Source: Klebsormidium nitens (Eukaryota > Plantae > Klebsormidiophyceae). From it: a stretch of 64,000 nt of DNA. Within the stretch, counting starts at the first letter, position 1. Each line of letters begins with the position of its first letter. Position numbers and translations under genes: made by a program. The notes under the pieces are model-generated. The model searched no databases, was not told the DNA's origin, and saw only the letters and a program-made list of their open reading frames with translations. The stretch spans positions 28,282 through 92,281 of the forward strand of contig DF237317.1 of the NCBI GenBank assembly GCA_000708835.1, in the 5' to 3' direction. Shown here in pieces: positions 43,905 to 60,261 of this stretch.

Positions 43905-46900
43905 ATGCGGAAGGGCGGTGCGCGCTCCGGTGCGAAGGTGGCAGAAGCGGACGGGCCACAGTGCAATGGCTGCGGCAGCACGTTCAGCCTCTTCAACTGG
44001 AAGGTGAGGACCACTCCAGGGACAAGACCGGGCGTCACAGGATGCGGGGGCAGTGGAGACAGGTCCACAAGCAAAGTCTTGGCAAAGGCCTGTTGCCAGG
44101 GCTTAGAGTTGCCTGCTTCCACCTATGTCAGAAGGTGCACCAGCTTTGTTCAGACGTTCAATGTGGTCTTTGCATCGCTGACGAGCCCTTCGAGATGGTT
44201 TTCCATCTTGTCGTGTGTCTCAGATTCTTGTTCTGAACCTCCCCCCCCTCCTTCCTGTGGCGTTGCAGCACCACTGTCGCCGGTGCGGCAAGGCCTTTTG
44301 CGACGCCTGCTCCAAGGACCGCGCCGTGCTGTCTGCCCCCGAGTTTGGCAAGGAGCCGCAGCGCGTGTGTCACCCGTGCAAGGTGGCGGAGCGCCGCGCG
44401 CGCCTGGATGGTCACGGCAAGCGAGGTGACACAGCGGTACCCCATCTGTCACCTGCTATGACCCTCTTGGCTTGACGTCGGTGAGAATTGGCCAGAGCAA
44501 CGTGGACATATATGAGAATAGCATCGCACACTGCTTGCCTCCCCCAGCTTGGCACTGTCGGGTGACTGCCCCTTGAGTCATCTGGTGGCTGTGTGCAGGC
44601 AACCGGCGCGGTGCGGCGCCGGAGGACAGCGCCCCGGTGGTGGACCTGGGCCTGGGGGCGGACCCTCTGGGGGGGGACCAGCTGGGAGACTCCCTGACTG
44701 CGCTTGACCTGGAGGACCCCCTCGTAGCGGCCACGCTGGAGGACGCCTGGTTTGGAGGGGCGGCGGGGGCAGCAGCCGATGCCAGAAAAGCCAGGGGCAA
44801 ACCAGGTAAGGGGGGGCGCAGCAACGCGCAGGAGCGAGGGTTGAAGTGGCTCTCTTGGGGCAAGCTTTCAGGGTTTCGGAAGTGGAAAGACGGCTCTGAA
44901 GCTTGCAGCAAAGGTGAAGGTAGCCGCCCCCATCTCTGAGCTGTTTGAGTGGGCGGTGGCACTCTGTTCCGGCTGCTATGGCCTTCGTTGCCCATTGTAC
45001 CCATCACCCGCTCATGCACGGTCAAGGGCCTTTGTTAACCGGAGGTGGCTCCTCTTGATGTCCTCCCCTTGCGCAGTCTCCGCCGGCGCTGCGGGGCGCG
45101 GCAAGGCTGCTGGCGGCGCCGCTTCTCCCGGAGCCGTGCCTGCCGCGCGGGGCAGCCCCGAGGGGGCAGCAACGGACGCGGTGCAGGCGGAGAAGCGGCG
45201 CGCGCTGGCGCTGAGGAAAGCAGGGAAGCCGGACGAGGCACTGCAGGTGAGAGGGGCTCGTGGGTTGGCAGGGGAGAGAAGAAAGGCATGCCCGGCGACT
45301 TGCCTGGAGTCTACTGCCACCCCAAAAGTTGAATACGCTGTTTGTGACGCTCACGCCCTCTTCCCTGCGGGGCCGCTCTTTGTGAGGCAGTGAGATCGAT
45401 GGTTGTCCGCCCTCCTGAGCTTTTTTTGTTTTGGGGACAGGCCCTGCGCCACGCACACGACCTGGAGGCGCAGGCGGGCACTGGTGGGGCCAAGGGCAAA
45501 GCGGCTGGTGCCAAGAAGGGGCGCTCCATGTTTGACGTGAACGAGGACGACATGGCAGACCCGGACCTGCTGGCGCAGCTGCACGACCTCGGCTGGACCG
45601 ACGACACCGAAGCCAAGAAACCGCGCAAACGAGCAGCACCGCCTGCCGGGGGGCCCGGGGCGGAGACGGCTGCTGTCCCGACAAATTCGGCAGGGCCGAG
45701 CCCAGAGAAGCGGGCGGCCCTGGAAGCGGAGATTGTGGAGCACAAGAAGCGCGCGCTGCAGCTGAGGAAAGCGGGGCAGCTGGAGGCGTGGCGGGACGAG
45801 ATGGGCGTGGCGCAGGCACTGCAGGCTCAGCTGGAGCAGCAACAGCAACAGCAGGCGCCGCCCAGCGCAGCGGGGACACCGGGGGGCAGCGAGGCGCCGA
45901 GCGGGGCGAGCTCAGACGAGGAGGCGGACCCGGACGTCCAGGCAGCACTGCAGCAGCTGGGGTTTGACAGACAGCAACAGGGCGGGCCAGGCGGCGTAGC
46001 AGGAGCAAGCCAGAACAAGGGGCCCCCAGGGGTGGCGGAGCTCGAGGCGCAGATATTGCGGTATAAGAAGGAGGCGCTGGCGTGCAAGAGGGCGGGCGAC
46101 CTGGACGGGGCGCGGGCAGCCATGAAGCAGGCCAAGCAGCTCGAGGCACAGCGCGACGAGGCAGCGCTGAACGACAGCACGCCGGCGTCGGCGCCGGCCA
46201 CCCCCCCCCAGCCAAGGGCACCGCGGTCTGGCGGAGTGAGATCAGGGCGCACGGCTCCAAGAGGCAGGGACGGCGATGGAGAGGCGGAGCCGGAGGTGAC
46301 ATCAGAGGACGAGCAGGACCCGGAGATACTGGCGGCGCTGCGAGAGATGGTGCGACAGTCGTCCAGGATTCCCTGTTTATACTAACGATGCTGATTCAAA
46401 CCGATTTGGCTTTCGTGGTTTGAAAGCGGGCTGGCATGAAGCAGCATAGTGTTGTCGAGGCCCCTTATATCTTTTCTATCTACTTGTGCAGACCCTTCCT
46501 TGGGCGAATTTAAACCTGACGCTTGTTTGTAGGTCCCGAACGGGTGGTCATTGCGCTTGTGGGCCAAGGCATGCGGATGGGCTCCCCCTTGTGACGGCTG
46601 CTGTGGTCTGTTGCAGGGCTGGCAGGACGAGAGGCCCCCAACGGCTGCGGGGCTGCAGCGCCCGGCGTCGGTGCGGCGGGCGGAGGAGGGGCTGGGCGCA
46701 CTGGTGGGCGTGGTGGAGGACATTGCGGCGCAGAAGGCGCGCCTGGAGCAGGAGGTGGCGGCGCACAAGCGGGCCGCGCTGGCCAAGAAGCGGGCGGGGG
46801 ACCTGGAGGGGGCCAAAGCCGAGCTGCGGCAAGCCAAGTGAGACAGCCCACCAGGACGCGGTTTCTTGAAAAAGCGCTGTGCGCTCGTGTCTGGCGACTC

Positions 46901-49900
46901 TGATCGTCTTGCACTGGTCTGTCCCCGGCTTTGCGTCTTCTGCCGTTGAGCACTGGGGCAGACCTGCGTGTGCCAGTTTGTGCCCGGCTGCATCCTCGTG
47001 CAATGCAATCTGCTCCATATGCGGGCACTCGGCCTAGACGCATCTCCCGCCTGGTGCGCTCACCGCTGCCCCGCCCTGCCCCTCCCCAGGCTGATTGAGC
47101 GCCGGCTGGAGGAGGCGGAGGAGGCGGAGGCCGCGGGGCTGGAGCCGCTGGACATGCTGATGCGCGCGGGGCACAGCCACACCACCGCCAGCACGGGGCC
47201 GAGCTCAGGCGCGCGGCAGGAGAGCAAGCCGCTGGCGGCCATCATGGCGGAGGCGATGCACAGCGACAACGTGGCGGAGCCGGACGTGGACTCGGACGAT
47301 GAGAACGACCCCGAGATCCTGGCACAGCTCGCGCACATGGGCTGGCACGAGGACGCGCCCGGAAGGGACGTGGCGGTCGCACCGAGGGTGGCGGCAGCGG
47401 AGAGGCTGGAGGGGCTGGCGGGGCGCGCAGGAGAGGTGGCGGCGCGCAAGGTGGCGCTGCAGCAGCAGGCACTGGCGCTCAAGCGGCAGGCGCTTGCGCT
47501 GAAGCGCGAAGGCGACGTGGAGGGGGCCAAGGCCGCGCTGGGGCGCGCCAAAGAACTAGAGCGGCAGCTGGAGCGGGGCGAGGAGCAGGAGGCAGCCGGG
47601 GCGCCAGGCCGGGCGCGGCTGCAGGCCCTGGGGAAACGGGGCACGGCGGAGGGGGCGGCTGCCGGAAGGGGCCCCGTGGATATGGCGCACGTAGCCCAGC
47701 TGCTGGAGGGGGGAGAGCCCGAGGTGGCGGTCACTGAGGACGACGAGCAGGACCCGGAGATCCTGGCGGCACTGCAGGTGAGCAGCGCAGCGGCGGGGTG
47801 GGGGCTCCGCAGCATCGTATGACCTACATCCCTCGAGCTTGAGGAAGCGAAAGTAGGTCAGCAACGAGGACAGATTGGTACACTCACGTCAGACTAGGTG
47901 TCAGTGGCGGCTCTAGCCCGAATCCTCGAATAGAGACAGACTACCCATTGAAAGCATCAAAAGCGGGGTCCGTCTGCCTCAGCAGATGCAGCGGTGTGAT
48001 CCCTTCGCTGCCGATGCTTACGCCGCACCCCCGTCGTGTTTCATGCTGAGGTGCGAGTAATGTGGGTGCCTGGAGCGAGGCGGGGTTACGCACTTTATTG
48101 GGAATAATGATTTTGAACAAGATTAGTGCGCATCAATTTGCAACGAGGTTTCTCCATACGAGGATTTCTGACCTGCGAGATGCATGCGCACGGAAATTCC
48201 GGCAGTGCATGCAGACCTCACGTTGCCGACCCTGCTCCAGGAGATGGGGTGGCAGGAAGAGCCGCCCGCACGTGCTGCCCCGGCTGCTCCCCCCGCCGCC
48301 CCGGCGCCGGCGGTGGCCAGCCCGCAGGAGTTGCTGCAGCAGGCGGGGGCCCTCAAGCGGCACGCGCTGGGCCTGCGCAAGGCAGGCCAGATGNNNNNNN
48401 NNNNNNNNNNNNNNNNNNNNNNNNNNNNNNNNNNNNNNNNNNNNNNNNNNNNNNNNNNNNNNNNNNNNNNNNNNNNNNNNNNNNNNNNNNNNNNNNNNNN
48501 NNNNNNNNNNNNNNNNNNNNNNNNNNNNNNNNNNNNNNNNNNNNNNNNNNNNNNNNNNNNNNNNNNNNNNNNNNNNNNNNNNNNNNNNNNNNNNNNNNNN
48601 NNNNNNNNNNNNNNNNNNNNNNNNNNNNNNNNNNNNNNNNNNNNNNNNNNNNNNNNNNNNNNNNNNNNNNNNNNNNNNNNNNNNNNNNNNNNNNNNNNNN
48701 NNNNNNNNNNNNNNNNNNNNNNNNNNNNNNNNNNNNNNNNNNNNNNNNNNNNNNNNNNNNNNNNNNNNNGTGGCGCGCGGCGCTGCAGCAGGCACACGCA
48801 CTCGAGGAGCAGGCACAGCACGCGCCCGCCCCGGCCGCCGCGGCCACCACAGCGGATCTCACCGGAGGGCATACGGGCCCACCTGCGAGCAGCCGAAGAG
48901 ACGAGGGCGGCCTGGCTGGGCCCCCGGCCCGGCCCAGCGTTGGACTGCCCCACCCCGCGGCACACATTTTCTCACAGCCGGTGCGACCGCCGGCCAACGT
49001 AGCCCCGGAGCTTACGCCCGTCAGTGCCGGCCCGCTGCCAGCCGACCTCTTCTCGAGCATGCAGGAGCCTGCCTTCGGGACGGCAGGGAGGACGCCCCAG
49101 GCTGCAGCCGCGACCACGTCAGGCCAGGGGGCGAGGGCGGAGGCAACTGGAGACGACAGCAGCACGGCCAATGACGCCGGGAGACGGTTCTTCCCGGAGA
49201 GCCGCAGAGAGCCGCTGCGAGCAGGGGCAGCGGCGGTGTCGCAGGAGGGGACGGGGCGGGGGCCTCCCTCAGACAGCAGTGCACCAGCAGTGCAGCGAGA
49301 CCCAGGGCGAGCGGTGGGCACCAGCGCAGGCAGGCCAGGGCTGGGCAGCCCACAGGGCGGCGCACCCAGTGATCCGCCCACCCCGCAGCCAGACCGCCGG
49401 CGCTCCGACGGTGACGAAGCTTTCAGCGCCCCGCCCCATTATTGGCCTGAGAGCAGCCCCGAAGCAGCGCCAGCCGCCCCTTCACCGAAGGCAGAGAGCG
49501 CCCGGCCCCCTGCGACGGCAGCGTCCGGCGGAGTGGGCGTGAGCGAGCTCCAGGAGCAGATTCGCGCGGGCAAGCAGGCGGCGGTGCGGCTGAAGCGGGA
49601 GGGCCGCCTGCCGGAGGCGCGCGCCGCCCTGCAGCAGGCACGCGAGCAAGAGAGGCAGCTGGCCGCGCGCGGGGCGGCCGCAGAGGCAGCGGCGGCAGAG
49701 GGGGGCTCCGTGGGGGAGGACGAGAGCGAGGGGCCAGTGGAAGACGCGTTCGACCCGGACATCGTGGCCGCGCTCAAGGGCCTCGGGTGGAGCGAGCAGC
49801 AGATCCGGGGGGGGATGGGGGCCGGGCCGGGCAGTGGCGCGGGCAAGCCGGCCAAGGTTGCGGCACCGCGAGGGGAGGGGGGCCAGCTGGAGGACCGGAT

Positions 49901-50006
49901 CCGAAGTGAGAAGCGGCGGGCAGTGGAGCTGAAGCGGGCGGGGCGGCAGCAGGAGGCGCTGGCGGTGCTGAGAGAGGTGAAGCAGCTCGAGAAACAACTC
50001 GGGTAG
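43905..50006 (+). CDS. N-terminal FYVE-domain protein with about eight DM14-like helical repeats (plant FYVE4-like candidate)
   Basis: FYVE signature [14 protein letters not shown]|[15 protein letters not shown]...RVCHPC, followed by repeated K(R/K)xAxxL(K/R)xxGxxxxAxxxLxxAKxLE units and D-P-E-I-L-A-x-L-x-x-x-G-W motifs. Ends [10 protein letters not shown] at 50006. Interrupted by an N gap. Confidence 0.85.
48394..48769. other. Assembly gap (376 N) inside the FYVE gene
   Basis: The N run splits one repeat: ...LRKAGQM before and [14 protein letters not shown] after, compared with [18 protein letters not shown] in another repeat. Little coding sequence may be missing. Confidence 0.9.
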
Positions 50007-51481
50007 CACCGCGGTGGCGGAGAGGAAAACAGGGTAACATTACTCTTTCTATCTTCGATGCTTCACTCAGGGGTTCGACTGAGCGGTTTGGGACATGAGG
50101 ATGGCATGGTCCTCTGAGTGAGCCGAATTGCAGCCTACGGCTCATGCGAAGCTCATCCGCTGACGAGCTCAAACCTGCGCGTTGAGAAAATGATTCGGGA
50201 GAAGTTGTGCTTTCTTGACAGCGGGCCGGGACGAAAAGCCAAAGTATTGTATGTACAGATTGTGGGAGGCGAACCTAAGCATCCGCTCCAACAGGTGAAC
50301 TGCGATATACGAACTTTTATATTATTGTTACACTCTTAGTCTGCAAAGCACGATGTAAACAGTGGAGTCGACAATCATTCTTCGACGCCACACGTTTCCC
50401 ATGTGAGCTTCAGACAGGAACTAATTGTCAGTGCCACTTTCCAATATCGTTGCCACACGCGGCAGAACTTGCCTACATTAGGCGGCCGCCCCGCTTCAGG
50501 CTTTCATCTACGATCAAAACGTTCTTGTCATGCAGAATTAAGCACATGCACCGGTTCAAACCGATACGCTTAAGTTATACATGCACTGCAAGCGGTGAGT
50601 TTTACCCACATGGCTTTTAGGCACATGGTCGACGCGAAATCGCTAACAATACTCAGCTAATTCATAAGGACAGTCATCGAATCATATCAGTCAGACTGCA
50701 TGCAATAAGTTCATGCGCGCGCATACTACATTGCTCAAGATGACCCGCGGCGACCGCATGTCCACATGGGAACTCCGTCGAAATGATATACTGATACAGT
50801 ACAAAGGGGATACATGCCTAGAACCATGCATTTATATTGGATCGTCTCACGCCGGGTCGCCAGAGGTTGCTGTCAGCGCGGGTGGATCGCTAGCGACTTG
50901 ATAATTGTCGTTGTTGCCCACAGACTACGTTTCATGGACCGCTGCTATGCGTGCAGCCAGCATCCGTGCCAAAGTGTCTCATTATGCAGTCACTGCCCAT
51001 AATCACTGCAAGTATTCATGGGTGCATCACAACCGTCCAGCTATGCCCTACAGTAGTATATCGGACTCTTTTACATACGTAAGGTGCAGTCAACACCAAT
51101 CTGCACCAGAACCCTCGGCACTTTAGCGGACTGTCTTTGGAATGTTGACAAGAATTGGTAGAGTAAAGTTAATTTAAATCATTATGGCAGCTCTGCCGGT
51201 GGGCATTCTCGAACATTGTTGTTCTTGGAACGTGGCAACGTGAAAGACAGCCACCGTAAAGATAGAAACACGGCCACAGAATACTACCGGCTGCAAGCAA
51301 AGGTAAAACCATTGGCAACAGGGCTAAGCCTCAAATTTTCTCTGGTGCACACTGGATCCGAGAGAGGGGTTCGCAGCTCGAGACTCTGAAACTTGTAATG
51401 CAGGCCGTGTTTATCCCCTTACATTTTAGACTCGATGAAAGCGTGCTCTACTCTTCCTTCCCTAACATCCTGCCTATCTGA

Positions 51482-54400
51482 TCACGTGGCACTACGCGGA
51501 GCATTCACAGCCCGTTCGCCGGTGGGCCTTGCCTTGGGGGTCCGCGCCTGCCCCTCCCCGGCTGGCATGCTGCTGCCCTTGCATCCGCCCGTTGGCGACG
51601 CGGCCTTGCGCTGCGCCAGCTTCGCCTCCCACTGCAGCGGGCCCATGGGTGCGCGCGCGGCAGTATTCACGTTCCCCGGCGACAGCACCTTGGGCGCGGC
51701 CGCCTCCGGGTCGGCCTTCCCGTTGGGCAGCGTCAGCAGAGCGGGCGGCACCGCCAGTCTGCTCACCATGCGGACCGGGGTGCGGGAGGGGCTCTCACAG
51801 GTGCGGGCGGCCTGCAAACACAACGAGGCCACCCGTTTTAGAAAACGGGGCGGCGACGCGATACAGGCGGCACCGGTAGCAGGCAGCGTCCGACGGGCGC
51901 GGCAAACACCAGAAGCTGGGTACAAGGGCAGCAAGCTTCCGACGCTCCTCCCGTTCATCGTCGCGATCCTCGAGGTCGCTCACCTGTAGCGGTTCCCCTC
52001 GGCCGCCGGTGTCGGTGTGCGCCTTCCAGTTCTGCAGCAAGGCGGCCACGTCGCGAGTGCGCGGCGTGGGGTCGGGGGACGCGGTGGCCGCGGCAGCCCG
52101 AGGGAGGGCGTCGCGCCCGAAGGTGGGGGAGCGCACCAACCGGGCGGGGCTCACGACGGGGGAGGTGGCCACCTGCACCGTCAGTCGCAGGGGCGCGCGG
52201 CCTGTAGCCAACTGCGAGGGCGGGACTGAGTACGGCCCAAGCCGCACCGCTCCTCCGGGGTGCTGCGAGAGGCCCGCAATGGGCATCCGCAGATAGGCGG
52301 AGCTGGGGGCGGCGGGGTGCGCGGCGAGTGGGGCGGCGGGGTGCGGGGGCCCGTGCTGCTGCTGCTGCGCCTGGAACTTGACCATAATGCGCTTCTTTGG
52401 GGCCTGGTGCCGCGCAGTGGCCGCCTTCACGTTGCCACCGCGCGGCGTGAGCGACATGCCCACGCGCGCCATGATGCCCGCCCGGAGCGCCTCCCTGCAA
52501 ACAGTGCGGGACACGTGTCGGGGAGGGCAACGAAAATCTTCAAATGAGACAGCTTTCAACAGCATGACACCCGGCTGCTCGACGCTAGGAGACACTCTTT
52601 GTCAACTTGACACCGTACTTCGATTGTCCCTTCAAAATGGATGGATTACTGCTTTCCAATTGGGCCGCCACAAGGTTAGTTGAAAATCCAGTCGTATTGA
52701 GTGAGGTTGTCGACGCTCTGGATTCTCTAGTCCTCATCGGTCGCAACGCGTCGGCAGTGCTGCCCCCCGGCGCCCTAATCCGCTCACCTGCTCGGCGGGT
52801 CGCTCGCGTGTGCCTCTTTCTCCCGCAGCTTTTCGTTCTCTCGGCGGTGCTTGCCCACGTGCCCTCCTAGCGCCGCCCCCGTCTCGAATTCAGCTCCGCA
52901 CTCGCCGCACTGGTGGAGGCGCGCTGGGCCCACCTGGAAGAGGCACACACCCGGGGAGCGGGTCAGGCACTCGGGAAGGGACCTGCCTTGCGCCATGGCC
53001 GCGTGAAAACACTTTGCAGGACCAGTGCTCTCATCTTGTCGTGCATCCGAAGGCGGCATGCCGTAGCTCACCTTGGTCACTGCGGCGCTGGTGCTGGACG
53101 TGAGGGTGCTCAGGAAGCGCGGGTCCGGCCGCCCCCCCGTCTCGGGCGCCCCCCGCGGCTGGCCGTGCAGCGCTTGGGCGCCATAGCGCGACAGGCCGGC
53201 ACCCGCGGGGCTGCCCATGCTGGCAGGGCGGTACGGGGCGGGCACGTGCGCCGCGGTGGGGCGCGCGTGGAAGCGGCTGGGGGTCGGCCCCGTGGCCTGG
53301 GGGCTGTTGGCGGGGGAGCTCTCTGGGCTGCTGGCGCCCGGCAGCTGCGACAGCACGCGCTTGCGCTTCTCGCCCCCAGGCCACGTGTCCGTCTGCGCGC
53401 GGCCCGGAAAGAAGACGCTGCTCTGCCCGATGGGCACATTCTCCGCCCACTCGGCGCTCAGCCGGGCCGCCGCATGCCACGCCCCACCAACCGCGACTGC
53501 CCGCGGGCGGGGCCCTCCTATACCTATTGCGACCGGCTGCGCGGCCGCGGGGGCCACCTTCTCCGTGGGGCTGGCGACCGTCATCTCGACATCCTGGGGG
53601 GGTTCACTTCCAGCAGTGGCGGCGGCCCCTAGCCGCGCCTTGACCCCGAGGGGCGACGCGGCGAGGGGCTTGGTGATACCTCGTTGCGCGACGCCCCGCT
53701 CGCGCTCGCGCTCTCGCTCCTGCTGCTGGAAGTGGATAGCCATTAACAGCTCCGCCGAGTCCTCGCACTCCGCCCCGCCTCCTCCTGCCGTGGCCTCCCA
53801 GCGCTGCGCCACATCGCGCCCGGTTCCCACGGGCGACTCTTCCGCTGCATTGCGCCACCCGCCCTCGCCCCCTCCCCCCATGCGCACCTCCTCCTCCGCC
53901 TCCTCGTCGTCGTCGTCGTCCATCCACGCCGGCCGCCCCGGGACCACGCACCGGCTGCCCGAGGCCGACAGCGGCCGCCCGAAGGCCGCGCGGTGGGGTT
54001 CCTTGGGGTGTGTGCCGGTGGGCGCGCGCTTGCGCGGCTTGGCCAGGGCCTTGGGCGCCTTCTTCTTGGCCGGGGTGGGCCCGCTGGAGTGGATGCGCTG
54101 GTGGCCGCCCAGGGCCTGCCCCGTGCCGAAGTCCTTGAAGCACGTGTTGCACCGGTAGCGCCCGTTGGCCAAAATGCACCCGCCGTACACCTCGCGCCCC
54201 ACCTCCAGCGCGCGCGCCTGCACCGCAGCGACGGGTCAGTGCGCGCACAACCATGCAACAGAGACAAGAGAGCCTCTTGGCGGAGCAACCTGCTGGAGAA
54301 CCGGCTTTGGATAAACATGCAAAGCACCGCTGCAGCGTGCCAAGTAAGTCTTCGACTCTGTATCCGGTACATACGTCCCACCGGCGGCCGCCGTCCTGCG

Positions 54401-57400
54401 GCTCTTGTCCATTTGGTGCCCTGTGGCTCACCTTGGCGTGCGGCTCCGCGGCTTCCCTCCTCTCTGCCGGCGCCCCGGCCGCGTGTGGCTCCGCCTTGGG
54501 CCCCACTTCGCTGCCGTAGTGGCCGTCTTCCGACATGGCGCGCAGCTCCTCGAGGCGCCGCCGCCGCTCACTGCGATGCAGCTTGCGGTGGCTCCCTGCG
54601 CGCCAACCACAGACAGCCACCCCTTCAGCAAACTGGCTGCAACGGCGCCGCCACCGCAAGCAGCGACACGTGAAAGTGGCCCACAGATCATTATAAGAGG
54701 GTCGGCGCAATTGCCAGCCAAGGTGGGGGCCAAACATCCTTGTGAGGAAACGCAAGGTATCCTTTCGATCGGACTGCGTGCGGCATCGGTTCGACGAAGC
54801 AACCCTCAAATCTGCAAGCATGGATCCTTGCCAACCTCGTGTATAATGTGCCGATCCTAGCTCTTGCCTTTCGAGCAGTTTTTCATCCAAGCCGTCCGGT
54901 CCTCCTTCAAACCGTCCAGGTTGATTATCCTTTGAGATTGGTCTTTTGGGATCTAGTCGCATCAATGGTGGAATTCTAGCTTGTCTGTTTTCCCGCTTGA
55001 ATATTTACGACTATACAAAAGACTAAATCTTTTTTGAATGTGTTGTAATAGCTCAAAAGGTTACGTGATAAGGGGACTTTACTACAGAAGCTTTAGCTCG
55101 ATTCTGGCCGAGAAGAAGAGCAGGTTGTTTGAAGCAGAGGTTGGGGCGGCTTAGACTGACATAAGAATTGGACAGAACAATCTCAGGGCCGCCGGATCAG
55201 TTGAGCTCGTACGGGCCTGAGAGAGGGGCCAGGATGCTGCGCGGGCCGCGCGCGCGCTCACCGAGCGACCTGGCGCTGGGGAAGACGGCGGTGCACTCGT
55301 TGCAGGCGAAGACGTGCGCGTCCCGCTCGCTGCCGCTGCTCTCCATGTCCCCGTCGGACCCGCTGCCGTCCGCGCCCACGGGTGGCGCCGTCTCGTCCAT
55401 CTTCTCCTCCCGCCGCCACTCGTCCGTCTGCCACTCGAAGCTCTCGAACCGCCGCGGCTTGCGCATCCTCCTGCTGCGCGCGGCCGTGAACGGCAGCATG
55501 TCCCCCGCGCCCACCTCCTCCGCGCCCGGGCCGACTGTCGCGGGCTGGCCCTCGCCGCCCTCCTCTGCCGCGCGATCGTCTGCCCGAGCCTCTCCGGTCG
55601 CGAGGTTCACCTGGGCGTACTGTGCTGGGGGCGGCTCGGGCGCGGCCTCGCGGGTGGGATCCGCGTCGTCGGAGCCCCAGCCCGCGGCCATGGGGCCGTA
55701 GGGCGCGCCGTCGTGGTAGGGCTCCGCAGAGGGCCCGCGGCGGACGACGGCCCCCGCGCTGGGCCCGTGCATGCGCTGGTGACCATCGCGGCCGCGCGAG
55801 GTGGGGAAGGTGGCGTCGCACTTGCGGCACTGGTACTTGCCGGCCTTCTTCATGCGCGGCCGCCCCGCCCGGCGACGCCCGTATGCGTCGCCGGCGCCCG
55901 CCTCGCCGTCGTCCATGTCGTCGTCGTCGCCCGAGTCGTCGCCCTGCAGCAGAGGGCCGCGCGTCAGCGCCAGCGGAGGAGCAGCCGCGAGAGCGAGGGG
56001 CCAGCGGGCAGCACAGCAGGCAGGCAGCGGGGTAAGGAGCATCTTCGCACAACCCAGGACACGGACACGGTTTGAGCTGGGCGATCTGATTCCATCGATC
56101 AGCCAAAAACTCAAACTCAGGCCTTTGAAACGACTGCAGGAACTTCGAGCAGAACGTTCGCAAGGGCCGAAAGACAAATATTGACATATGAGGGTTCGAG
56201 TGGTCCCAATGCGGAAGAAGGACGAAAGAACGGGCTGCACGACAATCACGAACGTAAGCACAGGCGACGCTTCCGGTTAGTGCTCTCTCGGGTCTATTTT
56301 AATGAGAAGTTCCCTTCATCAACCCTGAGGTGGCTAGTGTTGGTGTTATTGTGGAAAGTTCACAGCCTGCAGCTATTCTTCGTGCAGCATCCCTGCAACC
56401 CTCATCTTTGTCGCGATGCTCACCGGCTGCCGGTAGATGATCTCCCCCAGCACCTCCTCGTCGTCCAGGTCGTCTCCTGCGTCCCCTTCAAGCGCGCACG
56501 CCACCGGCTTCTCCTCGCGTGCCACCAGGAACACTGCAACACCAGAGCGGCTGCGATCAGGAGGGCCCTTCCCTCAATCAAGGCAGAGGGAGACAGCTGG
56601 CGGCTGATGCGAGACGCAGGAGGGGCGCAAGTGCCCCCCAGGCTCGTCTCGCTGGCCATCTTGGGGCTCTCACCGTTGATCTCAGGCGGTGGCCTTGGCC
56701 CGCTCCTGATGCCCTTCATGGGGGGGAACTGCTGGCCCCCGTGGACTCTCTGATGGCCCCCCAGAGCGTGCCCGTTTTTGAACCAGTCCAGGCAGGTCGG
56801 GCACTGCAGCCAACCGGGGCCCGGAGCGCGGGACGAGTGGCCATCCCCCTGCCACGTCGCACAAAGAATGTCAGCAATCAACACCAGAGGCACGTACACG
56901 GCTCTTGCGAATTGTGCCAGTACTTCATAGCGACCGACAACGTGGGGCGATGGCCCGATTGACGGCCTGCACCCCTGCAAAGCGCAGGTCCCTCACCTTG
57001 GCCTCCGTCTCCTGGTCGTCGCGGGGCAGCCTGGCCCGCTGCGCGGGTTGGTGCGTCTTCTGGTGCCCCCCCAGCGCCTGCAGCGTCTCGAAGCCCTTCC
57101 CGCAGGTGCGGCACCGGAAGCGCTCGCTGCCAGCGGGCCGCTTGTGCACCACGCGGTGGCCCCCCAGCTGCTGCGCACTCTCGAAGCTCAGCCCGCAGTC
57201 GGGGCACACGTGGCGGCCCGCGCCAGCCGGCCCCTCAGGCCCCTCGCTCCCCTTGCGTGACACCCTGACAGGGACAGTTCATGATCAGCAAGCTGTGACC
57301 ACTAGTCACGCCCGCACAGCAGACGTGTATAGTGAACGGCTCATAGATCAACGTTCAAACTTTGTTCAGACACACATATATCTGCCTTTGACCTGTCCTC

Positions 57401-60261
57401 GCTTAAAATGGCAACATTCAATTGAAAGGAACAAGGGACAGGCGCCCACACGCTCGAGCCCTCAGAAAGCTGCTTCCAAGCGAGAAAGGACGCTTCACGA
57501 CCTTGAGAAGATAGGGTGCGAGAAGGCCATGTTGAAAGTAAAAATGCGATAGGAAGTTGCACGAAATCATCCACGCATTCGCTTCCATGGCCACAGCTCC
57601 GCCCTACCTGCGCCCCCTTTCCCACTCGTCCTCATCCGGGGATCCCTCCCGCCTCCGCTCCATGCTCGCGCGGGCCTCCAGGAATTGCTGCATCCACCAA
57701 TGGCGGGGGTCGCCCTCGTGCGTGCCCTCCGCACACAGCGCCACCTCAGCTGGTAGTGCGCCCTCAACCTTGATGTCGCTGCTCCGGATGATCCCGTTAC
57801 CGGCCTGGCCGTCTGCGATGCTGTCGCTGCTGTGCAGCTTGATGGCAGCCATCTGATGGCTGAGCTGCGTGGAAGTGGTCTCCGGCCGCACCGCCGCCGC
57901 CACCAGGCTCGCTGCCGCGTGCTGCTCCGTCCAGCCGTCCTCCACGTAGGCGCCGCGCCCGCCCTGCTGCGCGGCTCTGCGCTGCCCCAGGCTGAGCTGC
58001 AGCGCGGCGGGCGACCAGGCCTCCTGGGGCCCCTCGCGCGCCTGCTCATCTGGCCCTCCCTTGCTGGCCTCGCCCTGCCCGGCAGCTTCGGCAGCCACCC
58101 GCAGCAGCTGGGACAGCGACAAGGGGGCCGGCCGCTGCATGCGCGGGCTCTTCATGGGGTCGGACAAGCAAGGGGAGAAGCCCCCTGAAAGAGCTCCTGG
58201 GCGAGGGGTGATGGGGGGCGAGAAGGGGTGGGGAGAGCGGAGGCTGGTGGCAGGAGGTGCGGGGGGGCTGGGCAGCAGCTGCGCCTGCTCCGCCAGCCAG
58301 GCGGCAGCCTCAGTGGCAGACATGCGGGCGAGGCCCTCGTCCTGGCGCAGGGGAAGAGCGGGAGGGGGGGTGTGAGAGGCAGGAGCAGGTTAGGGAGGAC
58401 ACAGACAGCGCAATGATGAACCACTGACATTTTCTGACGGGTTCTCGAAGGCAATTCTCAGAGAAGCAGAGTGATCATGTCTGTTCACCTTGATCTGTGG
58501 ACACAGTGAATATAAGCTGAGCTGCAAGGAGCCAATATGTTTTGGTGCTGCCTTCCTGGCCCCCAGGCAGCACTTTGACTGAGGCGCCAGCAGGCTGTAG
58601 GACAGGTTGCTGGTGTAGCGCGTGCCTCTGGAGACTAACAGCAGCTGCCTATGGTTTAGCAGCTCAGCTGCATCCGCCATGACTCTCTGAGAGAAAACAA
58701 GCAGCCTGATTCCCTGGTTTCCACCCATGCACGCAAGGGAGAACCCCTTGAGAATGTGGGGTTGACTTGCAGTGAGAGCTGGTGCGGCGCTCACTTGCTC
58801 AAAGTCGTGGGTGAAGTTGCGCGGTGCCAAGTGGCCTATGTACTTGAGCGCCGCAATGTCGTGTGCCGCTGCGGCCCTCTCCGCTGTGGTGAAGTCTCCC
58901 AGCTCCACCAGCTCGGATTGGCCGTCCTCCGGCTCAAACATGAGGTAGGAGCGCCACCTGCAGGCACACAGCAGCGCTCCACTCAGAATGGCAGCATGTT
59001 GTGGAACAAGGCAGGCTCGAGTACGTCTGCTAAAGAGACTGTCTCGCATGAATCCAATATCAGCTCCCGCTGTGCACTTTCTACAGCAAGAATGGAGGCA
59101 GACAGAGAGGGAGCAGAGCATGCAAGTTTGTGTGATTGGGGCATGTCCTCACCGATCGCCCCGCTTCTCGACGCCTTGATACTGAGGGTCCAAGTTTGAG
59201 CTCGGGTAGGCCGTCGGTGTTTCCGGCTTTTCGTCAAGGACGCTCAGGTTGTGTGCCACGAAGCTCAGCAGCGCCCTCGAGGCATCAAAGTATTCCACCC
59301 CCCTTTGAGCACCTTTTGTGAAGCGTGCCAGAGCCGGGCAGCAGTAGTAGACCATGTTCCGGCCATTGCCCTTGTGCACTGTCTCCAGGTGCCAGCCCAG
59401 CCGCTCCAGGCGCGGCCAGACCCCCATGTGGAACAGGTCCGACATCTGGCTGGTAGGCGTCGCGCGGATGTCCATCTGCGCCAGCTCCTCCTGGATCTCC
59501 AGCGTGCTGCAGTCGCGGTACCGCGAGTTGGCCACCAGCCGGCTGCGCCTGCTGCTCTTCTCCGCAAACAGGTGGTAGTGGCAGCTGCTCAGGTCGTCCT
59601 CCTGGCCAATGCTGAACGCGGCCCACAGCGTGGCAGCACTCGAGTGCTTCCTGAGCAGGCGCACAAACTTCTCCAGGCTCATCTCATTGCGGGCCATCTT
59701 GCTGTGTGCGTCCATGATGCGGTCCTGGACCTTGGCGTCGGTCACGTGGTGGAAGAGCCTGGCCAGCAGCTTGCGCCCGCGGTTGCCCAGCACCATCAGG
59801 CTGCCGCGCACGTGCTGCTCCTTACTGTGCTGCAGGCTGCTCAGCTTGAATGCATGGTAGAGGGGATGGAGGGCGCGCTTGAACTTGTTGTAGTAGTACC
59901 AGCGGCACTGAATGAAGTTCTTCTGCTGCCCGTCACCAATGAACCTCGAAATTGGTTTGAAGTTTTTCTCAAAAAGGAAGATGCCGAGCACAAAATCCTT
60001 CTCTTCTTCGATGCTCCATGTTGTGGACCCAATGCTGTAGTCTGGCCAGAGCGCATGAGCAGGGCCCTCTGTGATTGGAAGAGTCTTGGAGAACCTGTCC
60101 CGACGCTGCCAATAGGGGTCGTCTTCATGCAGGGCCGGCTTCCAGACAGTGGACCGTGCCGGCTTGGGCCTAGCTATTGGCAGCTGGGAGATGTCCACTT
60201 GAAAGTTGCTACCCCGTCTGACTCTAGGAGGCTCCGAAGCTGCAGCATCATCGCCCGCCAT
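51482..60261 (-). CDS. Large multi-domain transcription factor: ELM2-like/SANT module + AP2 domain + seven C2H2 zinc fingers (about 13 exons)
   Basis: Every junction checked is GT-AG with matching phase, e.g. GAT CG|gt 59152..cag|G TGG 58957; CGC AG|gt..cag|G GTG; CTC G|gt..cag|GG AGC; AGC AG|gt..cag|G GAG; CTA CAG|gt..cag|GCC. Stop TGA at 51484-51482. The donor after the 58697 exon is the least certain. The 5' end may extend upstream of 60261 (possible acceptor ctctag 33 nt before the ATG). Confidence 0.8.
52845..57206 (-). other. Seven C2H2 zinc fingers, five with QALGGH-like helices
   Basis: CPDC..QQLGGHRVVH; CRTC..QALGGHQKTH; CPTC..HALGGHQRVH; CRKC..RGRDGHQRMH; CNEC..RSLG|SHRKLH (spliced); CNTC..QALGGHQRIH; CGEC..AALGGHVGKH. 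Confidence 0.92.
58795..59181 (-). other. AP2/ERF-like DNA-binding domain split by one intron
   Basis: Spliced peptide YQGVEKRGDRWRSYLMFEPEDGQSELVELGDFTTAERAAAAHDIAALKYIGHLAPRNF follows the AP2 pattern YxGV...W...I/L...LGxFxTAExAAxAxDxAA...G..A..NF. Confidence 0.85.
59240..60230 (-). other. ELM2-like motif + SANT-like domain + conserved plant domain (family of Arabidopsis At1g09040/At2g47820-type proteins)
   Basis: RVRRGSNFQVDI (ELM2-like R-V-G-x-x-Y/F-Q), WSIEEEKDFVLGIFLFEKNFKPISRFI...WYYYNKF (SANT-like), then MSLEKFVRLL, FSIGQEDDLS, DLFHMGVWPRLERLGWH and RGVEYFD. These match my recollection of that plant family and need HMM confirmation. Confidence 0.7.

Follow-up and report, generated by a model that had tools for sequence, protein, structure and literature searches.

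Proteins that join an ELM2-SANT module to zinc fingers are known from animals, the fingers being of the GATA type in MTA and RERE and of the C2H2 type in TRERF1 and ZNF541. Animal ELM2-SANT proteins bind the histone deacetylases (HDACs) HDAC1/2 and scaffold class I HDAC complexes (PMC4344507), and binding to RPD3-type deacetylases is common to plant and animal ELM2-SANT proteins (bioRxiv 10.1101/2025.08.11.669681; PMC4344507). In Arabidopsis, the SANT1-4 proteins (AT1G09050, AT1G09040, AT2G47820 and AT1G55050; PMC12902250) interact with HDA6, whose occupancy at about 1000 unmethylated genes depends on them (PMC10808059). Here we analyse a locus of the streptophyte alga Klebsormidium nitens, located within a 64,000-nucleotide (nt) stretch of scaffold DF237317.1 (assembly GCA_000708835.1; hereafter the window), in which a SANT module is followed by a divergent AP2 domain and seven C2H2 zinc fingers: a new domain architecture, conserved and lineage-restricted, that is assembled from known modules. 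An earlier note, made from the letters of the window alone, had read the locus as one gene for an undescribed composite regulator; this interpretation proved largely right, with the novelty overstated.

Gene structure and conservation

On the minus strand, between positions 60261 and 51482, what the open reading frame (ORF) track shows as separate fragments can be joined across GT..AG introns to give one frame whose only stop is the terminal one, as the earlier note had proposed. The initial joining gave 11 exons and a 5676-nt frame with one terminal stop; the model was later refined to 12 exons and 1845 amino acids (aa), every intron being GT-AG. From the N to the C terminus, the predicted protein consists of an ELM2-like motif, SANT/DUF7952, DUF7650, the divergent AP2 domain (split by intron 1) and the seven C2H2 fingers. 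Fragment-level Pfam assignments follow the same order, the first fragment matching DUF7952, DUF7650 and a Myb/SANT-like model, the second matching AP2 in part, and five later ones matching C2H2. Base composition in the 11-exon model is 0.60–0.76 GC in exons versus 0.50–0.66 in introns, and GC at third codon positions (GC3) lies at 0.79–0.93 in each exon, the introns showing no periodicity.

We compared the locus with related sequences: L001, a Logan assembly of SRR23617307; L002, a Joint Genome Institute (JGI) metagenome contig; and L081 and L082, variants of the L002 lineage. Between L001 and the window, exons are 85–95% identical and carry only gaps divisible by three, whereas introns are 57–73% identical and carry ragged gaps. 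L001 retains all ten donor/acceptor pairs of the 11-exon model and also the pair of the added intron 9; its projected ORF is open over 1826 aa, with 87% protein identity and the same stop. The ratio of nonsynonymous to synonymous substitution rates (dN/dS) against L001 is 0.30 in the model frame as compared to 1.43 and 1.56 in the shifted frames, and the per-exon values are consistent with coding in every exon but the 36-codon exon 6. In L002 no stop interrupts the frame before the contig ends, which gives at least 1671 aa with all seven fingers and 71% identity to K. nitens; exon order and intron positions are kept, with identical split points in the AP2 domain (to the codon) and in finger 5 (to the residue). 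In the comparison of L081 with L002, gaps divisible by three are confined to exons, and splice sites are kept except for one uncertain intron 9 donor. Judged by these sequence comparisons, the gene evolves under purifying selection in the Klebsormidium clade. The pattern as a whole goes well beyond what chance would produce. A pseudogene or mis-assembly was considered and rejected, given an open frame in independent assemblies from three sources and a dN/dS of 0.30.

The twelfth exon results from an intron that is easily missed. A gap not divisible by three in the long ninth exon of L001 led us to recognise the extra intron 53071-52934 (intron 9), which in K. nitens can silently be read as coding because its length is divisible by three and it contains no stop; the earlier note probably took it as such, and the comparison with L001 shows it to be an intron. 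In L001 the segment is frameshifting, with a net length difference of 8 nt (3-nt and 11-nt gaps), and the 11-exon model projected on this genome acquires a frameshift and two stops, both resolved by removing intron 9. In L002 (9910-10229) and at the equivalent place in L081, the boundaries of intron 9 are ambiguous: two donor/acceptor combinations preserve the frame, and the chosen donor is not conserved in L081. Exons 3 and 10, in turn, each mimic a terminal ORF because their donor sites form in-frame stops (TAG at 57605-57607 and TGA at 52785-52787, respectively). The TAG after exon 3 is replaced by GTACGG in L001 and by GTACAG in L002, and we therefore consider it incidental; L002 has a similar TAG at its own exon 10 donor.

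The features of the locus are as follows.

60178-60225, minus strand: ELM2-like N-terminal motif RVRRGSNFQVDISQLP (aa 13-28), in the highly conserved N-terminus, which is predicted to be disordered
59605-60018, minus strand: SANT plus helical extension (Pfam DUF7952; aa 82-219), 67.5 bits versus a cutoff of 33.4
59251-59454, minus strand: DUF7650 alpha/beta domain (aa 270-337), 38 bits versus a cutoff of 27
58831-59187, minus strand: AP2 domain (aa 359-412), interrupted by intron 1, whose position is shared with L001 and L002
59153-60261, minus strand: exon 1 (aa 1-369 plus 2 nt) with the start ATG, ELM2-like motif, SANT/DUF7952, DUF7650 and first AP2 strand; matches the GenBank model exactly; dN/dS 0.09
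59152-58958, minus strand: intron 1 (195 nt), interrupting AP2
58795-58957, minus strand: exon 2, remainder of AP2; dN/dS 0.07
57608-58341, minus strand: exon 3, with the start of an AP2-subfamily-like linker, a low-complexity region and a conserved LQLSL (aa 538-542); dN/dS 0.29
57265-57607, minus strand: intron 3, at the AP2-to-finger junction
56997-57264, minus strand: exon 4, with finger 1 (57144-57212) and finger 2 (57051-57119), zf-C2H2_6 at 57.7 bits; conservation begins right at the acceptor AG
56674-56848, minus strand: exon 5, with finger 3 (56741-56809); dN/dS 0.08; 92% aa identity in L002
56424-56533, minus strand: exon 6, acidic linker ending in the conserved EEVLGEIIYRQP
55944-56423, minus strand: intron 6 (480 nt), the GenBank split point
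55262-55943, minus strand: exon 7, with finger 4 (55767-55835) and the first half of finger 5
54432-54595, minus strand: exon 8, with the second half of finger 5 (whole finger 54576-55310 across intron 7); the split finger is restored by splicing in the window, L001 and L002
53072-54217, minus strand: exon 9, with finger 6 (54089-54157), a basic KRKR run and a low-complexity region
52934-53071, minus strand: intron 9 (138 nt), with a conserved AAG/GTGAGC donor and CCAG/G acceptor and a poorly conserved interior
52788-52933, minus strand: exon 10, with finger 7 (52847-52915)
51984-52494, minus strand: exon 11, with the conserved motif VGMSLTPRGGNVK..KKRIMVKFQAQQQQ (52356-52463); dN/dS 0.23
51482-51811, minus strand: exon 12 and stop codon; same stop in L001

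The SANT module and the AP2 domain

Domain scores were computed on the spliced stored protein P0153. The DUF7952 match spans the entire profile (1-131 of 131), and DUF7650 sits C-terminal to it, in the same order as in seven land-plant members; both exceed their gathering scores. In the structure model the SANT region is helical (pLDDT, the predicted local distance difference test, of 80–95), DUF7650 is alpha/beta and the N-terminus has a pLDDT below 50; the SANT tyrosines Y123 and Y124 are invariant. Upstream of SANT, the motif PR[VI]GxxYQ[AV]x[IV]P is present in 125 of the 149 listed family members, the K. nitens variant being RVRRGSNFQVDIS at aa 13-25. This N-terminal motif aligns weakly to the start of the ELM2 domain of MIDEAS, whose ELM2-SANT is also the closest solved structure to the N-terminal module (E 0.004, ~60 residues); a fold search with the whole module returned no significant match. 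Against the ELM2 profile, one relative scores 20.6 bits, below the cutoff of 21.7. In sequence terms, ELM2 is recognisable at the motif level only.

Arabidopsis SANT proteins act with MBD proteins. Modelled alone (pLDDT 82), DUF7650 resembles the MBD2/3/4 and BAZ2B TAM domains at non-significant scores (E 0.5–1.5, probability 0.4–0.66), and we draw no functional support from this resemblance. An Rfam match to alpha_tmRNA at 59911-60052, within exon 1, was dismissed as a chance match (15.9 bits versus a gathering score of 50).

The fusion of the SANT module to AP2, pointed out in the earlier note, is visible inside exon 1: the exon ends with the first 10 AP2 residues, YQGVEKRGD-R, which form the first strand, and the remainder follows intron 1. 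The Pfam AP2 profile (PF00847) is covered over its full length (1-54 of 54). Among solved domains, the best matches are WRI1 (7wq5, E 5.1e-7) and ERF096 (5wx9, E 2.8e-6), followed by AtERF1 (E 0.04), and the HMMER alignment to WRI1 extends into the AP2-subfamily inter-repeat linker. Within the gene, constraint is strongest in the AP2 exon (dN/dS 0.07), which shows 87% identity in L002. Neither the SANT module nor the AP2 plus linker region of P0153 found a match in indexed homology searches.

C2H2 fingers and possible repression motifs

All seven C2H2 fingers reported in the earlier note are present, with finger 5 split by intron 7, and the window, L001 and L002 share the C-X2-C-X12-H-X3-H spacing. 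QALGGH is exact in fingers 2 and 6, varied to QQLGGH, HALGGH and AALGGH in fingers 1, 3 and 7, and absent from fingers 4 and 5. The best finger model is zf-C2H2_6 (57.7 bits versus a cutoff of 25), and by their QALGGH-like motif the fingers are classed as plant Q-type.

A motif scan of the K. nitens protein found no DLNxxP motif of the ERF-associated amphiphilic repression (EAR) type. One LxLxL motif, at aa 538, is conserved in three taxa (LQLSL; LQLAL in L002), with about one LxLxL expected by chance at this length. Together with the KRKR run, the conserved LQLSL is weak evidence for the mechanism proposed below.

One gene or two

GenBank models two genes at this locus. Gene A, the hypothetical protein KFL_003680185 (GAQ87669.1, UniProt A0A1Y1IE28, 869 aa), comprises SANT, AP2 and three fingers; its first 853 residues are identical to our exons 1-6, with the same introns 1-5, after which it runs 16 codons past the exon 6 donor into intron 6, to a stop at ~56376. 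Gene B, with fingers 4-7 in 1025 aa, has its ATG at 56042 within intron 6, reads in frame across the acceptor and continues through exons 7-12, using intron 9 (33 + 992 = 1025 aa). A SANT plus AP2 plus three-finger protein is thus already public as an uncharacterised hypothetical protein. While we found no paper describing the locus or its architecture, which agrees with the 'undescribed composite' of the earlier note, the protein entry in GenBank and UniProt takes away part of that claim. Two stored sequences, P0163 and P0164, were considered as transcript-derived and junction-crossing and were rejected, both being genomic read-throughs.

The annotation break sits in intron 6; the junction between AP2 and fingers, exon 3 to exon 4, is joined in the public model. 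The earlier note's joining of AP2 to the fingers holds at this point: the junction is used by KFL_003680185 and conserved in four related sequences. In L001, identity collapses right at the exon 3 donor and returns right at the exon 4 acceptor, with 38 identical bases after the AG. Exon 4 has no in-frame ATG upstream of finger 1, the first downstream methionine comes after finger 3, and fingers 1-3 are strongly constrained.

At intron 6, the alternative to a single gene is a pair of adjacent genes as annotated, with the SANT module, AP2 and fingers 1-3 in A and fingers 4-7 in B; the three-class fusion would persist, with three fingers instead of seven. Besides the GenBank models on DF237317.1 themselves, three observations favour this arrangement: stored protein P0153 terminates with the 16 intron-derived residues and a stop, intron 6, with 480 nt (769 nt in L002), is among the longer ones, and it contains a block that is ~80% conserved between the two closest genomes. 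However, neither of the two annotated ends is conserved. The read-through tail of gene A has an unrelated counterpart in L001 (stop-free for more than 60 codons) and in L002, and its annotated stop is not conserved in either; the ATG of gene B falls within a 47-nt segment that is missing from L001, where no in-frame ATG occurs between the last upstream stop and the exon 7 acceptor, and in L002 a stop lies two codons ahead of that acceptor. The exon 6 donor and the exon 7 acceptor, by contrast, are conserved, and the GT and the AG mark the exact points at which sequence identity falls and rises. Exon 7 is preceded by 99 pyrimidine-rich nt that include a CTGAC branch-point-like site, as expected for the 3' end of an intron. 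Nor does the conserved block set intron 6 apart, comparable blocks being found in introns 2, 5, 7 and 8 and the block itself being undetectable in L002. The exact 869-aa product of gene A is carried by no Logan contig, and the sole strongly conserved block that resembles an untranslated region (UTR) follows the final stop. With neither the annotated stop of gene A nor the annotated start of gene B conserved, we favour one gene: the comparative evidence makes a single gene at intron 6 quite probable, with exon 6, as we infer, spliced to exon 7, and makes two genes unlikely. A different possibility, to which we give still less weight, is that one locus yields several products, the full-length fusion plus finger-only isoforms from internal promoters or alternative first exons. 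Such isoforms might begin at an ATG..GTGAAG island in intron 3, in intron 6, where the public annotation begins a gene model, or in exon 7. The island's ATG and GTGAAG donor (57530-57498, 32 nt apart) are phase-compatible with exon 4 and conserved between the window and L001, but conservation elsewhere in intron 3 is the lowest of the locus (60% identity to L001), and with ~8 ATGs in its 343 nt a shared ATG is plausible by chance. The island may thus be an alternative first exon of a finger-only isoform or a chance match.

Several points weigh against reading the single gene as encoding a DNA-binding, HDAC-recruiting protein. The public annotation splits the locus into two genes at intron 6, and exon 6 has a dN/dS of 1.22 over 36 codons, too few for coding selection to show. 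Identity of the SANT module to land-plant members is only ~25–31%, and the Pfam ELM2 profile (PF01448) gives no match with the K. nitens sequence at E values of up to 1; of the 'ELM2/SANT' module of the earlier note, SANT/DUF7952 stands and ELM2 is reduced to a motif. The AP2 domain scores 21.9 bits alone and 17.8 bits within the whole protein versus a gathering score of 33.3, such that its identification in the earlier note is borne out by the solved-domain matches (E 5e-7) and not by the Pfam cutoff. The domain has also lost several of the arginines with which AP2 domains typically contact DNA; in the first strand, R is changed to Q and to E. Taken with the lack of QALGGH in fingers 4 and 5, the low AP2 score and the substituted arginines would fit a protein in which the AP2-like domain and some of the fingers are degenerate relics that do not bind DNA, the whole acting as a scaffold or adaptor recruited by other factors. 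We consider such decay improbable: the AP2 exon is the part of the gene under the strongest constraint and is well preserved in L002, and the zinc ligands are intact in all seven fingers and nearly invariant over three taxa.

Distribution of the fusion

An exhaustive HMMER search with exon 1 returned one close cluster (P0001, 94% identity) and 208 other matches at E up to 0.001, all distant. A chlorophyte origin, considered on account of the GC-rich exons and the TGTAA past the stop, was rejected because the close cluster includes GAQ87669.1 of K. nitens. We assessed 149 listed of these 208 distant relatives of the SANT module, which are 24–34% identical, and none of the 149 has an AP2 signature or a C2H2 finger. 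The seven longest contain DUF7952 and DUF7650 only, and the named ones are land-plant 'SANT domain-containing proteins', including Sinapis alba KAF8116141.1. This agrees with the earlier note's statement that the modules reside on separate genes in land plants, the land-plant SANT relatives that were checked having neither AP2 nor C2H2. At 77 further metagenome loci (824 kb) with SANT-module relatives, no AP2 or Q-type fingers were found nearby. Given their absence from the 149 listed relatives and the 77 metagenome loci, the fusion, which we see only in the Klebsormidium clade, looks Klebsormidium-specific.

Proposed function

The single 12-exon gene would encode an 1845-aa nuclear regulator. 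Its N-terminal 350 residues, a divergent SANT1-4-type module, would bind an RPD3-type histone deacetylase; we infer HDAC binding by residues 1-350 from Arabidopsis SANT1-4 and the animal ELM2-SANT proteins. The divergent AP2 domain and the seven dispersed fingers, separated by disordered linkers, would provide sequence-specific DNA contacts, and the protein would bring the deacetylase to its own target sites and repress them, that is, act as a self-targeting repressor. Land plants would divide the same job between separate DNA-binding proteins and SANT-HDA6 adaptor proteins. By analogy with the characterised systems, we hold with moderate confidence that the single 12-exon gene encodes a DNA-binding repressor with a built-in HDAC-recruiting module. 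If so, a transcription factor of a streptophyte alga combines plant DNA-binding domains of two kinds with a histone-deacetylase adaptor of its own. The single-gene model would, if true, reunite a gene that is split in the annotation of a reference genome on which many studies of plant terrestrialisation draw. It would also affect transcription-factor family counts, since the classification rule would decide whether the protein falls under AP2, C2H2 or SANT.

More speculatively, the fusion might be read as a 'Rosetta stone' that records a partnership acting in trans in land plants, where AP2-family and/or Q-type C2H2 (ZAT-like) proteins would bring SANT1-4/HDA6 to unmethylated gene targets. We think this rather unlikely; were it true, Klebsormidium would have hard-wired the partnership in one polypeptide, and these families would become candidates for the targeting of the plant SANT-HDA6 complex. 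If the proposed model of the gene is right, the fusion gives a testable hint at possible DNA-binding partners of the land-plant SANT-HDA6 complexes.

Non-coding conservation, further motifs and neighbourhood

The most conserved non-coding stretch of the locus is the 161 nt right after the final stop (51321-51481, minus strand), 85% identical to L001, which is probably a functional 3'UTR element; a TGTAA occurs 61 nt past the stop in the window only. Blocks of ~60–85 nt with ~80% identity to L001 were observed in introns 2, 5, 6, 7 and 8 (58342-58413, 56590-56652, 56180-56279, 54859-54925 and 54218-54278, respectively), with no Rfam match. The intron 6 block, which is undetectable in L002, was considered as an internal promoter or 5'UTR and rejected as special evidence, the blocks in the other four introns being similar.

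Two coding segments outside the assigned domains stand out by their conservation. The invariant block EEVLGEIIYR(Q/N)P closes exon 6 (56424-56459), and the exon 11 motif VGMSLTPRGGNVK.ATARHQAPKKRIMVKFQAQQQQ (aa 1577-1612; 52356-52463) is near-invariant across K. nitens, L001 and L002; a Pfam scan of the latter gave no match. On the plus strand, the convergent neighbour gene at ~46373-50006 (L003 13995-17628) is annotated as a 1246-aa FYVE/UBA-domain protein. The upper end of the window (64000) is the end of scaffold DF237317.1.

Comparison with known systems

The animal ELM2-SANT co-repressors (MTA1, MIER, RCOR, RERE and MIDEAS/TRERF1/ZNF541) are linked to the K. nitens protein through the MIDEAS ELM2-SANT, its nearest solved relative. 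The similarity is weak (E 0.004), Pfam ELM2 has no match in K. nitens, and we regard the two as analogous architectures, not orthologues. We know of no animal ELM2-SANT member with an AP2 domain or plant Q-type fingers. Because animals already fuse ELM2-SANT to zinc fingers, the principle of combining an HDAC adaptor with fingers is not new; and as every module of the K. nitens protein is of a known type, the locus adds no new biochemical principle.

Closer is the likeness to the land-plant SANT family, including Arabidopsis SANT1-4: DUF7952 and DUF7650 stand in the same order, an ELM2-type motif lies upstream, and the SANT tyrosines are invariant. The link to the SANT1-4 genes themselves is drawn from family names and a Brassicaceae homologue, not from direct alignment. 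The K. nitens module scores 67 bits on Pfam, versus 130–194 bits for land-plant members; the members examined have neither AP2 nor C2H2, whereas in K. nitens the module makes up the first fifth of the protein and DNA-binding domains follow it.

With the AP2/ERF superfamily (AP2-subfamily WRI1; ERF096), the K. nitens domain shares a full-length alignment to the AP2 profile, and its element ..AAAAHDIAALKYIG.. resembles AYDLAALKYWG of the AP2 subfamily. It differs in being a single AP2 domain, below the Pfam cutoff and with first-strand arginines replaced, that is fused to other modules. RAV/TEM proteins (AP2 plus B3) offer a parallel for AP2 and a second DNA-binding domain in one plant repressor, and TEM1 is among the solved AP2 matches; in these proteins, however, the second domain is B3 and not C2H2, and there is no chromatin-adaptor module.

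Finally, the fingers resemble those of the plant Q-type C2H2 proteins (ZAT/ZPT/SUPERMAN) in their dispersed arrangement, ligand spacing, QALGGH motif and zf-C2H2_6 match. Plant Q-type C2H2 proteins usually carry one to five fingers, whereas the K. nitens protein has seven, spread over ~860 residues and fused to SANT and AP2.

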